IMG/VR virus record: IMGVR_UViG_3300031521_001337
Location: 1 to 64,000 of that record
Reading direction: 5' to 3' (one strand)
Length of the DNA stretch: 64,000 bases
The notes beneath the pieces are model-generated. The model worked only from the letters and a program-made list of their open reading frames with translations, was not told the origin of the DNA and did no database searches. Position numbers and translations under genes: made by a program. Each line of letters begins with the position of its first letter. Positions within the stretch are counted from its first letter, which is position 1. This document shows, one piece after another, positions 2,695-58,971 of this stretch.

Positions 2695-3564
2695 TTAATG
2701 CCACATAGCAGAATATTTATTAAATCTAAAGTCTTGTGTTTTGGTTTTAAACTCTCTATAACAGGACTTTAAATGTTCATCGCCATATAACCAATCTTCA
2801 TTATTATATATACCTGTAAGATATATTAATTTTGAAATAAAAGTAAATTTATTCAAAGATGCTATTTTATCTCCATTTTTAACAGGTTTATCTACAACAT
2901 ATTGTTTAAAGAAGTCAATCATTATTTTAGTGAATAGACAAATACGTGCATAATTTGGTGCATCTTTAGAATTACTTTCTTCAAGCTTAGCAGAATTTAA
3001 AACACTACCAGTTTTTAAACCGTTCAATTCCTCATCACATAACGAAGCCATTAAATAAATCGCTGTATTATTATCTATGACAATACTTTTTTTACCAATT
3101 TTCAACGTAATAGTAGCTTTCTGTTTAAATTCAATATCATTACCATTAATTTTACCTGTTGAATTATCATCTATAGCTTTTACAAATTTTTTCATTTGAC
3201 CAGCTGGACTTTCTTTTGCAACCAAACCACCTACACAATTAGTATATGCAAAATCAAATGCAAATAACAGAAAATACCAAAACTTTTTAGAATCTATATT
3301 AAACGCTTTTAATATGAGTTGTATATTTTTATCTTCTTCATCACCATTCATATAATCATTATAAGTAAAATTGGTTTTTATTGTACCTTGATTATAATTT
3401 TGCACAAAAGTATATAATCCATTCAATGAACACATTAACATACCATTTCCTTCAGCATCAAAATCTGCATCTGGAAGGTGCGTATAAACCATATTACATA
3501 CATATTCTAATAATGGTTCTTCTTCTATACAATCGTCTATATCAAACTGATCTACTACACTCAT
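2695..3564 (-). CDS. Hypothetical protein (standard code, TGG Trp only)
   Basis: Likely start MSVVDQF; TACTTTTG -7 element at 3583-3590. Confidence 0.7.
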   Translation of the reverse strand: MSVVDQFDIDDCIEEEPLLEYVCNMVYTHLPDADFDAEGNGMLMCSLNGLYTFVQNYNQGTIKTNFTYNDYMNGDEEDKNIQLILKAFNIDSKKFWYFLLFAFDFAYTNCVGGLVAKESPAGQMKKFVKAIDDNSTGKINGNDIEFKQKATITLKIGKKSIVIDNNTAIYLMASLCDEELNGLKTGSVLNSAKLEESNSKDAPNYARICLFTKIMIDFFKQYVVDKPVKNGDKIASLNKFTFISKLIYLTGIYNNEDWLYGDEHLKSCYREFKTKTQDFRFNKYSAMWH

Positions 3565-3590
3565 AATATTGTTATTTTTTGACAAAAGTA

Positions 3591-3625
3591 AAAAAAAGTC
3601 TGTAATCAACAAAGACTACAGACTT
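3591..3625 (-). terminator. Terminator closing the lysis cassette
   Basis: Minus strand aagtctgtagtc...gattacagacttttttt. Confidence 0.7.
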
Positions 3626-3630
3626 CAATA

Positions 3631-3837
3631 TTATTTACCAATCTTTTTATATTGGTAATCTACCCCAAACAAAGCACCTGCAAAGGTGCATATTTCCCCA
3701 AAGGCTACTAAAATACTGTTATGTATAACTCCAATGGGTACTACTCAAAAACCCATAAATAAAAGGCATATCCCAGCCAACACCAATACACAAGCTACTG
3801 CTAATTGTACGTTCAATTTTGTTTCTTTCAAATTCAT
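3631..3837 (-). CDS. Small two-TM holin-like protein (1 in-frame TGA=Trp); absent from ORF track
   Basis: MNLKETKLNVQLAVACVLVLAGICLLFMGF[W]VVPIGVIHNSILVAFGEICTFAGALFGVDYQYKKIGK; resembles Bacteroidetes phage lysis-cassette membrane proteins. Confidence 0.8.
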
Positions 3838-29996: not shown

Positions 29997-30014
29997 ATTT
30001 ATTCTATCATTTTG

Positions 30015-30087
30015 CACCCTTGGTAAGACTCGAACTCACACTTACAAATTTTGAAGATTTGTGTGCTAACCATTACACTACAAAGGT
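30015..30087 (-). tRNA. Opal suppressor tRNA, anticodon UCA (predicted Trp-charged)
   Basis: ACCTTTG TA GTGT AATGGTTA GCAC A CAAAT CT-TCA-AA ATTTG TAAGT GTGAG TTCGAGT CTTAC CAAGGGT G; full cloverleaf with A1-U72 and G73, short variable loop. Confidence 0.93.
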
Positions 30088-34748: not shown

Positions 34749-35246
34749 ATGAATATTGAAAAAAGACAAATTCCAGGTTGTAAACGTATTTTAACAACCT
34801 CAGAAATTCCTGCTCGTTTTGCCTCAATTGGTGGCGATACTTATGCGAAAGATACTGTAATTGAATTGGACGCCGTTGTTGAAATGGAAGCTATTTCACA
34901 GGGTGGAAAACCGTGGCTCGGTATCTCTGCACTTGTTAACGGTTCAGTTGCCGTGGTTGGTGCTAATACGTTAATGGGAATTTATTTCACAAGTGGCGAA
35001 CAATCAAAACGTGCCGTGATTGACAACGGTTTAAATTTGAGTGTTAAGGACTTGTTAGGTAAAACTATCAAAGTTGTAGACCACGAAACTGTAACTGTTA
35101 ATGCTTTCCGTACTGCTGACGAAATCGCCGAGGGTAAAGAAATCAAAGAGGTTGCAAAAAATATGCCTATCTTTGAACTTGTTAACGAATCAGTTGATAC
35201 TGAGGATGTTACAGTTGATACGGCTAAACCAGCCAAAAAGAAATAA
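34749..35246 (+). CDS. First early-arm protein, hypothetical
   Basis: 165-aa ORF followed by a strong terminator. Confidence 0.75.
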   Translation: MNIEKRQIPGCKRILTTSEIPARFASIGGDTYAKDTVIELDAVVEMEAISQGGKPWLGISALVNGSVAVVGANTLMGIYFTSGEQSKRAVIDNGLNLSVKDLLGKTIKVVDHETVTVNAFRTADEIAEGKEIKEVAKNMPIFELVNESVDTEDVTVDTAKPAKKK

Positions 35247-35262
35247 CATTTTAACAATGTTA

Positions 35263-35298
35263 TAAGAGAAGTACATTTTTGTACTTCTCTTTTTTTTA
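35263..35298 (+). terminator. Intrinsic terminator
   Basis: aagagaagtaca tttt tgtacttctctt followed by a T run. Confidence 0.8.
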
Positions 35299-35715
35299 CT
35301 ACGTAATTATATATTATAGTATTCAACTTAGTATAATTATGTATTACCAAATATTGAGTATAATTGTGAGCACATGGAAATGTATGAAAGGCACTTGGAT
35401 ATCATGCAATAAGTTCGAAGATGTCTTTGGACATGAACATAAAGTATATCCATACAAGATGAGATTAGAAGAATATGAGCCATTTTTCCCCATAGAATGC
35501 TATATCCAAACACGAAATGATATCATAACTAATGTGGTATTAAGATAGAGATGATTATTTAAAAAAATATTTGGGTTGATTGAGAGTAAACGAGCACTGA
35601 CAACGACTCTCAACCACTCCAAAAATAATCCCAATAATCATTCCAACCAAATTTTACATTGAAAACCCTACATATGACAAAACATATTTGGATTGATTAT
35701 GTAATATTATTAACA

Positions 35716-35794
35716 GAGTGCATATTGTAACAATTCAGTTACAATAGATTTATACAATTGGTATAAGTTTAGGTCCTACGCGATGCTCAAACTC
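35716..35794 (+). ncRNA. Candidate twister-sister-like self-cleaving RNA
   Basis: P1 GAGU/ACUC, internal loop GCAU / GCUCAA, two internal hairpins; a C^A cut at 35788 gives the same AAACUCAAAAAC leader as the hammerheads. Confidence 0.4.
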
Positions 35795-35806
35795 AAAAAC
35801 ATCATA

Positions 35807-36100
35807 ATGAAAACATCTGAAGAAAATGCTAAATTAGTTATATCATGTGTTAATAATATCATATCAAAAGAAATTGATTCTTTTAGTAAAATTGAATTAA
35901 CAAAAATTTTAAAAGAAACTAAATGTCCTTATTCGTCAAGTATATTTAATCTTCTCAAATCTTGTGAATTAATCACAAATATATCACGAGGTAAATATAT
36001 ATTTACTACAACTCAACCAATATATTATGGAATTATTCAAAAAGAACTTGATAAAGCTATGAAAATGCAACAAGTTTATAATCATAATTCTAAAAAATAA
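35807..36100 (+). CDS. Hypothetical protein (winged-HTH-like)
   Basis: Start MKTSEEN after an A-rich leader. Confidence 0.6.
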   Translation: MKTSEENAKLVISCVNNIISKEIDSFSKIELTKILKETKCPYSSSIFNLLKSCELITNISRGKYIFTTTQPIYYGIIQKELDKAMKMQQVYNHNSKK

Positions 36101-36169
36101 AACAATATATATTATTCATTTAAGTAATTTTGAACGTTGGTATTAGTCATTGTAAAATGATAACATACA

Positions 36170-36259
36170 ACTCAGCTAGAGAGAGTATAACATTGGTTTC
36201 CGATGAGATCTAGACGAAACGAGAGAATAAGAGGAAACTCTAAAACTCTCGTAAAACTC
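36170..36259 (+). ncRNA. Hammerhead ribozyme, pseudoknot type (U4C core variant)
   Basis: ACUC/GAGU hairpin; loop CUAGA pairs with loop II UCUAG; core CCGAUGA...GAAA; stem III CGAGAG/CUCUCG; GUA^ at 36253; stem I GUUU/AAAC. Confidence 0.7.
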
Positions 36260-36359
36260 AAAACACATATCACAATGAATAAAACTGTATATTTAGCATC
36301 ATCTAGTGATGCACGTCACACATTACACAAAGTTTATAAATCTTATAAACCAGGTAATA

Positions 36360-36635
36360 ATGGAAAAAATTAAGGTTGATTTCAAATCACAAACTTTAGA
36401 GATTATATCTAATATAACTGTAAAAGAGTTATTAGCTATTACAAATGCTGTTGATCTTTCAAGTTTTACAATAATTAGTTCAATAAATAAGCTTGAAATT
36501 ACAGGTGTTAGAACTGAATCTGAGAATATTATAATTCTTAAGAGTCTAGGTTATTATACAAATAAAGTAATTGCTGAAAAACTTGGATTAAGTGAACGAA
36601 CAGTTTATCGTAAACTAAAAGAATTAGGTATTTAA
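36360..36635 (+). CDS. HTH DNA-binding protein
   Basis: NKVIAEKLGLSERTVYRKLKELG. Confidence 0.7.
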   Translation: MEKIKVDFKSQTLEIISNITVKELLAITNAVDLSSFTIISSINKLEITGVRTESENIIILKSLGYYTNKVIAEKLGLSERTVYRKLKELGI

Positions 36636-36699
36636 TCACACACTTTTGAGTCTCCGAAAGCCGTAAGGTGATTAGGAGATTTATTAAACTTATTAAATT

Positions 36700-36927
36700 A
36701 TGATAATAACAATTTATCTCATTGGAATTCCGTTATTCCCATTCATTATTATGCTTTTCACAAAGTTCTTTCCAAATGTTTTAGAATGTGATGATCCTGC
36801 TGATTATGCATTGGGTTATGGAATGATGTCATTATTTTGGCCATTTGTATTATTTGTTGCATCAATAGGTATAATCTATTATAAGTTTTATCAAATGATA
36901 AATACTATAGATAAACATAAAAAGTAG
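36700..36927 (+). CDS. Small membrane protein
   Basis: Two TM segments, SLFWP motif. Confidence 0.6.
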   Translation: MIITIYLIGIPLFPFIIMLFTKFFPNVLECDDPADYALGYGMMSLFWPFVLFVASIGIIYYKFYQMINTIDKHKK

Positions 36928-37201
36928 CAATACTCTCTCATAAACATAATTGAAAAAATCATTAGATCTGATGGTTTTTAGTACGGTACAGATATCCCGG
37001 GTTCAATTATGTTTACTTTCATAAAAGACTTATGATTTGATTAACCGTCGTCCGACGGTGTTGCATACGGTGCATAATAGTCCGGAGCCTATCATGAGTC
37101 TTTTTTACAATATACATTCCTCATCAGTCTGTATTTCTTTCTAATTATCATTATTTCTATCCCAACTATATTTAGTATTACAGTGATGTAAGAACAATAT
37201 G

Positions 37202-37279
37202 ACTCAGCCTAGGAGAGTATAACATCAGTTTCTGAAGAGACTAGGACGAAACGGGGAGCTCATCACTCCCGTCAAACTC
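37202..37279 (+). ncRNA. Hammerhead ribozyme, pseudoknot type
   Basis: CUGAAGA-G...C-GAAA core; pseudoknot CCUAG/CUAGG; stem III CGGGG/UCCCG; GUC^ at 37273; stem I GUUU/AAAC. Confidence 0.88.
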
Positions 37280-37294
37280 AAAAACTTATTTATT

Positions 37295-39135
37295 ATGATA
37301 ACATTAATCATTATTTATATTATTGGATTAATATTATGTCCAATATTATTACTTGTATTAGAATATAATTTTCCTGGTAGTATGTATTTAAATAACGGTC
37401 AAAATATCGGAGCATTTTTACAACATCATTAATTTGACCAATAGGTTTAATAATAATGGCAATATTTTTATTTGATCATATTGCATCTAATATTCATAAA
37501 AATTAATCAAATGCTAAACATAATATTAATTACAATCGTTATCATTTTAATAGTGGTAATGGTTGCAATTTTAGTAGCTCTTATAGTTGATGTATTTACA
37601 TACTTTAAATTACCAAAGATATGTATATTATATGGTATTATAATACTATTATTAATTGTTAACATTGCTATTCATTTAGAAAAATCAGTTTAAAATGAAA
37701 TTAAAAATCTTTATTATTAATATTGTTGTAGCAATAGTATTAATTGTTTCTTTTACTGCATGTAATTCTCAATCAAGAAGACATGCTCCAGTATTATCAA
37801 AAACTTACACAATAACTTACAAAGGATATCTTTCTGGTAAGTTTCTAAAACGTTCTACATTCATTAGTGCTCGTACTCCAATTGAAGCTGTACAAATACT
37901 TAAAGAACAAACGTTTGTTGGATTCGATAGTATTAGTGTTAACTCAATTAGACCTAAAGAATAATGATTAAAATTATTGTTAATATTATTGTAATAGTTT
38001 TGGTTATTATTCTTTTACGAGTATTAACATCTTGTGAAGCAAGAAGTGGGCATATGCATCAAGCTACAAAACCCACAATTGCTACACAAGTTGAATCAAT
38101 AACTAAACCAAAACATAAATTGGTTTACACATATTACATCACACACATTAAATCTCGGGATAAAATCAAGGTTTATGTGTATGATGATGATATAACATCG
38201 TACGAGTATCCAATTGATAAATTTAAAATCAAATAATCATGATAATATTATTATTACTTTTATTATGTTTCGATATATTTCTAACAAGAAAATATTATAT
38301 TGAAAAAGATCTTACAGGTGTATTACTTGGAGGTTTTGCGTGTGGATTTATAATGTGTGGGATTGTACTTATGTTGTGTATTAAGTTTCACATTCCATTA
38401 CAATAATCATGGTACTATTCTTATTAATTGTTGGATATTTATTATCCATTGTTCTGTGTAGTGTCTTATATAGAATTGCATCTCCGAAGTATTTAGATAT
38501 ATTTAGTAAATATGAAGCTGAATGTGATTTTATGTGGTTTATTCCTGGAATAAATACATTAATAGTGATATTTATGATTGGATTATTATTAATTGTTTTT
38601 ATCTGTATGTTATGCGATAAACTCATAAAAAGAGTTCGCTTTAATATCCGATTTAAATGGTTAGATAATTTCATCACCAAATTTAAAAATGAAGATCTAT
38701 AATGTTAACTAAAACTCAAGCAATAGTAATTTGTTTATCACCGTTCTTAATCTTCTATTTATTTGTAGAATTGTGTGCAATGTTTATATCAATAGAATGT
38801 AAAATCAAAAAACATGACTAAAACTGAAAAAACTCTATTATACATTGCACCATGGATTATCTTTTACTTGTTAGGTTCATTTATTGGACTACAATTCAAT
38901 ATTATCAAATGGCAAGAAGAATCACGAATGGGATATGTAATGCTTTCTTTACTTATTGATTGTGGAATATTAATGTTTAAATACATAAGCTAATGGTAAT
39001 TATACTCAGTCTATGTTTAGCATTTGATATATTTATGGGATTAATATGTTTTGATAAAGAAAATCATATTATGTCGCATTTATATGCTGCCGCAGCTGGA
39101 TTTTTATTAGCTGCAATTATTGTAAATATACTTTA
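37295..39135 (+). other. Cluster of small membrane and lipoprotein genes (e.g. 37695..37964, 37964..38236, 38409..38702)
   Basis: Tightly coupled short hydrophobic ORFs; lipobox-like FTAC and LTSC. Confidence 0.6.
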
Positions 39136-39689: not shown

Positions 39690-39692
39690 TTA

Positions 39693-39761
39693 ACTCAACC
39701 AGTAGAGTATAAAATAGTTTCTGATGAGACTGGACGAAATATGTTTAAACATATCAAACTC
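39693..39761 (+). ncRNA. Hammerhead ribozyme, pseudoknot type
   Basis: CUGAUGA-G...C-GAAA; pseudoknot CCAGU/ACUGG; stem III hairpin UAUGUUU-AAACAUA; AUC^ at 39755. Confidence 0.9.
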
Positions 39762-41303: not shown

Positions 41304-41305
41304 CA

Positions 41306-41370
41306 CCTCATCCAGAAGAGGCTAAAAAGTTTACTGAAGAGGCTGGACGAAACACATTATGTATAAACTC
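41306..41370 (+). ncRNA. Hammerhead ribozyme, pseudoknot type
   Basis: CCUC/GAGG hairpin; pseudoknot UCCAG/CUGGA; CUGAAGA...GAAA; short stem III; GUA^ at 41363; stem I GUUUA/UAAAC. Confidence 0.82.
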
Positions 41371-53951: not shown

Positions 53952-54037
53952 TTGGATATAGCTCAGCCTGGTTAGAGCGTCGGCAGCAAGACAAAAACAT
54001 TAGCCGGAGGTCGGAGGTTCAAATCCTTTTATCCATA
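53952..54037 (+). ncRNA. tRNA-like RNA with an 18-nt anticodon loop
   Basis: Canonical D arm, T arm and acceptor; stem TCGGC/GCCGG encloses AGCAAGACAAAAACATTA. Confidence 0.75.
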
Positions 54038-58908: not shown

Positions 58909-58971
58909 ACTCCACTAAGGGAGTATAAAGTTATTAAGCTTAGTGCGTTACACAATTCGTGTAGGTTAAAC
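58909..58971 (+). ncRNA. Pistol ribozyme
   Basis: P1 ACUCC/GGAGU; loop ACUAAG pairs with CUUAGU; AUAAA; UUAAG; GCG; P3 UUACAC/GUGUAG; G^U site at 58965/58966. Confidence 0.88.

Follow-up and report, generated by a model that had tools for sequence, protein, structure and literature searches.

Genomic context of the element

As shown in Table 1, the region around the element carries a terminator-like hairpin, a long non-coding spacer, a gene array and four RAGATH-1 hammerhead ribozymes. The window analysed here is the whole stretch of 64,000 nucleotides, which is the first 64 kb of a 213-kb, 29.6% G+C IMG/VR phage record (IMGVR_UViG_3300031521_001337) found in peat metagenomes. The Rfam scan identified two RAGATH-1 hammerheads (RF03152) above threshold and two below it, as well as a pistol ribozyme. 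In the hammerhead alignments, the cut falls after GUC, AUC or GUA, and the 3' product begins AAACUCAAAA(A)C, 21-23 nt before an ATG. The first hammerhead of the array has CCGAUGA instead of CUGAUGA and a long stem III (CGAGAG...CUCUCG). The Rfam alignment therefore stops early (36169-36239), and this hammerhead may be impaired.

The ORF directly downstream of the element had no PHROG match, and only 100%-identical relatives were found in IMG/VR. A BLAST of 35000-38000 against the INPHARED phages gave no match. The ORF listed at 35279-35548 starts inside the terminator-like hairpin and is probably spurious. One tRNA of the window has the anticodon UCA, which reads UGA and is labelled SeC by ARAGORN. 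In a large phage this suggests suppression or recoding of the UGA stop codon, which would affect ORF calls elsewhere in the genome. A second tRNA, called by Rfam but not by ARAGORN, has 18 nt where the anticodon loop should be, and could be an intron-containing or otherwise unusual tRNA. The sequence around 4539 recurs at genome position 209845, which is consistent with a terminal repeat of about 8 kb in a record classed as linear, and a second segment occurs three times, at about 7883, 184528 and 213189.

Table 1. Coordinates of the element and of the surrounding features in the window.
Feature	Coordinates	Strand	Details
tRNA, anticodon UCA	30014-30087	-	
Terminator-like hairpin	35264-35291	+	follows the preceding gene
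Non-coding spacer	35292-35715		about 420 nt; imperfect inverted repeat at 35579-35613
P1, 5' strand	35716-35719	+	GAGU; pairs with 35791-35794
First part of the L1-like 5' strand	35720-35722	+	GCA; equivalent to G5 C6 A7
Hairpin PA	35723-35746	+	stem 35723-31 with 35738-46; loop AAUUCA
Hairpin PB	35747-35769	+	stem 35747-55 with 35761-69; loop AAUUG; base G.U, A-U, U.G (consensus G.U, G.U, U.G)
U linker and second part of the L1-like 5' strand	35770-35772	+	U, then AG, equivalent to A8 G9; A35771 pairs with U35787 and G35772 with C35786
Distal P2 hairpin	35773-35784	+	GUC (35773-75) pairs with GAU (35782-84); loop CUACGC (35776-81)
L1-like 3' strand	35785-35790	+	bulged G35785, C35786, U35787, C35788^A35789, A35790; predicted scissile bond between 35788 and 35789
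P1, 3' strand	35791-35794	+	ACUC
Predicted 5' leader of the cleaved mRNA	35789-35806	+	AAACUCAAAAAC plus AUCAUA
Downstream ORF	35807-36100	+	97 aa
RAGATH-1 hammerhead	36169-36258	+	36 bits; cut would be GUA^A at 36253/36254
RAGATH-1 hammerhead	37201-37278	+	59.4 bits; product starts at 37274
RAGATH-1 hammerhead	39692-39760	+	67.6 bits; product starts at 39756
RAGATH-1 hammerhead	41305-41368	+	50 bits
tRNA (Rfam)	53952-54037		47.5 bits
Pistol ribozyme	58909-58970		

A leader shared with hammerhead products

The 12-mer AAACTCAAAAAC occurred exactly three times in the window, at 35789, 37274 and 39756, while about 0.03 occurrences were expected by chance from base composition. With up to 2 mismatches there was no enrichment, with 25 found against 22.9 expected. 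The copies at 37274 and 39756 begin at the first base after GUC^ and AUC^ of hammerheads, respectively, and the two further hammerheads leave AAACUCAAAAC. The third copy lies 18 nt before the ATG at 35807, and there is no hammerhead core (CUGANGA ... GAAA ... UH^) in 35700-35800. RF03152 hit four other sites but not this one at E<=1. No match to any Rfam family, including pistol, hatchet, twister, HDV-like and hairpin, was found at E<=10 in 35500-35900.

An earlier note on this sequence had proposed a sixth ribozyme, twister-sister-like or of a new type, which would cut C35788^A35789 and lacks the UGCAAG loop. The motifs on which it was based are all present, namely GAGU, GCAU (35720-35723), AUGC (35783-35786), UCAA (35787-35790) and ACUC, together with the hairpins UGUAAC/GUUACA (35727-32 with 35739-44) and AUUUAUAC/GUAUAAGU (35748-55 with 35761-68). 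The single-sequence fold reproduced the pairing given in the note but was not significant on its own, with an MFE of -18.5 kcal/mol, z = -1.53 and 18 of 200 shuffles as good. Significance comes only from the comparative data, which support the proposal with a corrected fold. However, the pairing of GCAU with AUGC is not supported by relatives.

A conserved phage RNA family with four covarying helices

DNA patterns taken from the 3' part of the element recovered many unrelated contigs that carry the same motif just upstream of an ATG, whereas the pattern TAGGTCT...GGTTTAGGTC returned mostly tandem-repeat noise and only two useful members. A covariance model (R1) built from 25 of the sequences found 71 hits, of which 54 were distinct, including extra divergent copies that no pattern had selected. 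With a revised model (R2), 65 distinct sequences from phage and metagenome contigs were obtained, here called family Y. The window copy (35710-35800) scored 62 and 65.4 bits with R1 and R2, respectively, although it was part of the seed. It was the only strong hit in its genome, where the next best scored 21 bits. Other phages of 67-183 kb have one or two copies, and one incomplete 22-kb contig (L072; loci with related motifs are numbered with the prefix L) has three. Three copies lie in genome bins labelled Sphingobacterium, Bacteroidales and Bdellovibrionales. A 100-kb phage that carries a Y element (L087) also has a group I intron (86 bits; 3546-3771, - strand) and three tRNAs. The family is absent from Rfam 15, and no Y site had an Rfam match at gathering score in the 16 Y-bearing loci scanned in this way. 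We found no description of the motif in the searchable literature, although an earlier unnamed description cannot be excluded.

The members share four covarying helices, P1, PA, PB and a local hairpin P2 with a bulged G (35771-35787 in the window). In the 65 sequences, 97.8% of cells were paired and 17 of 23 pairs showed compensatory change. No shuffle of 500 reached the observed values on four of five measures and 1 of 500 did on the fifth, pair types, while slid controls paired only 20-40%. An all-against-all mutual-information scan ranked exactly the modelled pairs on top and showed no pseudoknot beyond the four helices. In P1, all five modelled pairs showed compensatory change and the three inner ones were 97-100% paired. 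The two outer pairs showed GC/UA/AU/CG and AU/GC/UA, and the inner GU/AC pairs were nearly invariant with one compensated exception each. In PA, five of the six modelled pairs showed compensatory changes, including the closing U-A/A-U pair, but the loop was not conserved. In PB, five of seven modelled pairs covaried, and the G-to-A change at 35748 and the C-G to U-A change at 35750/35766 in the window both preserve pairing. A pairing of GUUU with AAAC, as in hammerhead stem I, was rejected because the changes in locus L056 and in the window are compensated within PB instead.

A pairing of GCA with UGC never covaried and had A.C mismatches in the divergent copies. In these same copies, the strand between PB and the 3' end folds on itself, and AGGUC, a loop of 5-8 nt and then GAU-G-CU form a hairpin with a bulged G in which every change is compensated. 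This P2 hairpin was not part of the structure to which an earlier alignment (A3) had been fitted, yet it was 100% paired there. A scan that left this stem free brought in ten more members with the stems GUU/AAU, AUC/GAU, GCU/AGU, GUA/UAC, GUC/GAC, AUG/CAU and GCA/UGC, and the distal stem, with eight types including the GUC/GAU of the window, was 100% paired in 65 sequences. The window loop differs from the usual UAUA(A/C). In the window, the covariation-supported fold is at -16.8 kcal/mol, 1.7 kcal/mol above the MFE.

The twelve unpaired or junction-closing bases of the core were conserved in 64-65 of 65 sequences. The bases of GCA were conserved in 64, 64 and 65, the U linker and AG in 65, and G, C, U, A and A of the 3' strand in 65, while C35788 was C in 64. 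The A-U and G-C pairs that open P2 held in 65 of 65. However, most members were fetched with patterns that fixed parts of the core, which inflates the apparent invariance. Only about ten members were free in P2, about a dozen in part of the L1-like loop (L1b) and six in the whole 3' half, and about eight were found only by the model. These agree with the rest but are few.

Comparison with twister-sister and other ribozymes

In the published four-way twister-sister ribozyme (RF02681), P1 is followed by G5 C6 A7 A8 G9 and a 3-bp P2, and the return strand reads G59 C60 U61 C62^A63 U64 before P1. A8 pairs with U61 and G9 with C60, G59 is extruded, G5 lies opposite U64 and C6 opposite A63, and the cut is between C62 and A63. 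The published construct sequence confirmed GCAAG, GCUCAU and the 3-bp P2. Family Y has GCA and then AG opposite a bulged G and CUC^AA, with the same partners and a 3-bp distal P2, and matches the L1 loop at 10 of 11 positions. The eleventh, A for U64, is the state in the twister-sister-like LINE-1 ribozyme, whose catalytic region is reported as having no mismatch to the natural twister-sister sequence env-33 (eLife 2024, PMC11620745). The one variant with A at the C62 position (L072:5517) fits the reported tolerance of C62A.

The wiring, however, differs from that of twister-sister. PA and PB are inserted inside the L1 5' strand between the equivalents of A7 and A8, 48 nt with the U linker in the window, instead of branching from the far end of P2 as P4 and P5 do, and A7 is the base that flips out towards SL4 in the crystal structure. 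P2 is capped by a loop. The PA and PB loops vary in sequence and length, and the conserved SL4 loop (G-UGCAAGU-C) is absent, as the earlier note had said, and with it the tertiary contacts T1 and T2, which in twister-sister bring the conserved bases together. New conserved features are the three wobble pairs at the base of PB and the U linker. PA and PB, which are joined without a linker, could stack side by side with P1-L1-P2, as P4-P5 do in twister-sister. The Rfam model (threshold 34 bits) gave no hit even at E<=10 in 35500-35900, in the whole 213-kb genome, in a consensus-like member (L072:7700-7830) or in five other records that carry the motif, which is explained by these differences. 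We therefore treat the element as working like a twister-sister, but not as a member of the family as currently defined.

The 'lantern' ribozymes of human LINE-1 and OR4K15 (PMC11620745) have an identical cleavage strand, GCUC^AA, and show that an L1 loop flanked by two short stems can cleave without SL4, though slowly. They have a contiguous two-strand internal loop (GCUAG), no extra hairpins, and are human repeats, while family Y has a split strand and two conserved accessory hairpins and sits in phage 5' leaders. The RAGATH-1 hammerheads and the pistol ribozyme of the same phage occupy the same genomic slot, cut (or, for Y, would cut) about 14-23 nt before an ATG and leave AAAC... at the 5' end, and the closing helix uses the first leader bases. 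Their catalytic cores are unrelated to that of family Y, which has no CUGANGA/GAAA core, no pistol pseudoknot and no 5' ACUC...GAGUAUAAA hairpin.

Interestingly, a second recurrent motif that is not in Rfam, here called family X, was found at L051:1050-1147, L026, L030, L056 (two copies), L061, L130, L148 and about 20 more loci. It has a 5' pseudoknotted hairpin with an invariant AUGUUCCU loop in place of PA and PB, and the 3' half of this loop pairs with bases after AUAAA, a pairing that covaries by eye. It ends in GAGU-GCAUG-GUA-GCUC^AA-ACUC, followed by the same A-rich leader, and looks like a twister-sister L1 loop with P2 reduced to one G-C pair plus a small loop. Rfam scans of the window, the target region, a consensus member, family X and 25 related loci showed no known family at any Y or X site. 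A third motif, at L011:3260-3333 and L052:7925-7998, lies before the same GCUC^AAACUCAAAAAC leader. It is a hairpin CUCUU...AAAGAG followed by UAUAAAUAA and AUGGUAGCUC, and the hairpin loop UACCA is complementary to UGGUA. It had no Rfam hit at these sites, and hatchet ribozymes lie nearby in both loci.

Predicted cut site and position before start codons

The match to L1 places the predicted scissile bond between C35788 and A35789, and independently the 12-mer shared with hammerhead products starts at A35789. In 46 of 54 distinct members, an ATG-started ORF begins 16-28 nt after this bond on the same strand, and the encoded small phage proteins are unrelated, which argues against a riboswitch or a gene-specific operator. 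A subgroup (L318, L305, L094 and L291) has a longer leader of 35-55 nt with a conserved small hairpin, CUGCUG...CAGCAG, between the predicted cut and the ATG. The elements occur in arrays before small genes, mixed with family X, and an orthologous gene is preceded by Y in one phage and by X in two others. At L363:615-680, upstream of the gene orthologous to these, the sequence folds as a minimal type III hammerhead (UUCUGUC^, a 7-bp hairpin, CUGAUGA, GACC/GGUC and then GAAACAGAA), but Rfam gave no hit at E<=1 and we did not use it as evidence. By direct reading, the leaders lack a Shine-Dalgarno sequence, which together with the Bacteroidota-labelled bins suggests a Bacteroidota-type host.

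Interpretation

It is almost certain that the element belongs to a genuine conserved structured RNA family, and likely that this family self-cleaves. We consider it probable, with slightly less confidence and without RNA or cleavage data, that the window copy rebuilds the twister-sister active-site loop on a differently wired four-helix junction and cuts itself between C35788 and A35789 by attack of the C35788 2'-OH. By analogy, P1-L1-P2 would stack as one helix, G35720 would contact the scissile phosphate, Mg2+ would assist, and PA and PB would buttress the loop in place of SL4. The three-dimensional equivalence of a split L1 strand is a hypothesis. The cut would release the 5' part and leave an mRNA with a 5'-OH and the 18-nt A-rich leader in front of the ATG.

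A conserved but non-catalytic leader element, such as a recognition site for a phage or host endoribonuclease, an RNA-binding protein or a translational regulator, with a coincidental likeness to twister-sister or a shared fold without catalysis, appears unlikely but is not excluded. The structure and its position before start codons do not demonstrate chemistry, the SL4 contacts that organise the twister-sister core are missing, the Rfam model fails, and other conserved, ornate motifs found near ribozyme-associated genes did not self-cleave when tested (Weinberg 2017). However, this reading has to account for the match to L1 with the same pairing partners, bulged G and strand polarity next to P1, for the activity of L1 plus two stems in LINE-1 and OR4K15, and for the position in the same slot, with the same leader, as bona fide hammerheads. 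The downstream genes are also unrelated to one another, which argues against a gene-specific regulator.

It is even less likely that the family is catalytic but the window copy is a weakened or dead relic, with the 5' end of the first gene supplied by a promoter in the spacer. The atypical P2 loop, a score in the lower third of the family (65 bits against 80-92 for typical members), the preceding terminator and long spacer, and the core change in the neighbouring hammerhead are in line with this. However, all twelve L1 and linker bases and all 23 modelled pairs are intact in the window copy, its two deviations in PB are compensated, and the identical sequence is kept in independent assemblies, although these are near-identical genomes. 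Chance hairpins or a decayed hammerhead next to a conserved leader or promoter would agree with the non-significant single-sequence fold and with the AGUUU...AAACU in the region, as in hammerhead stem I. For practical purposes this is refuted by the 65 distinct relatives in unrelated contigs, which keep the fold through compensatory changes, none with the CUGANGA or GAAA core and with no Rfam hit.

It is about as likely as not that family Y is a natural, non-circularly rearranged twister-sister ribozyme, in which the accessory helices have moved from the end of P2 into the active-site strand and the SL4 contact is replaced by PB with its tandem G.U pairs. Together with family X and perhaps a third type, it would then reveal a set of ribozymes with a twister-sister core on interchangeable scaffolds, which large phages of Shine-Dalgarno-less hosts would use side by side with hammerhead and pistol to give each small gene a defined 5'-OH leader of about 20 nt. 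If active, it would also add a compact element of about 80 nt that leaves a defined 3' product, which is useful for RNA engineering. The inferred purpose is to define short unstructured leaders, or separate cistrons, in an operon without Shine-Dalgarno sequences. According to a review, processing of polycistronic transcripts has been suggested for such ribozymes and remains unproven. The rigid spacing between the cut site and the start codon is shared by four unrelated ribozyme types in the same operons, which makes the long-open question of what phage-encoded self-cleaving ribozymes are for, leader definition for translation or stability of individual cistrons, directly testable. If the element is active, one small-ribozyme active site can be held by quite different scaffolds and strand connectivities in nature, which bears on how ribozyme classes arise and on how many are missed by model-based searches.
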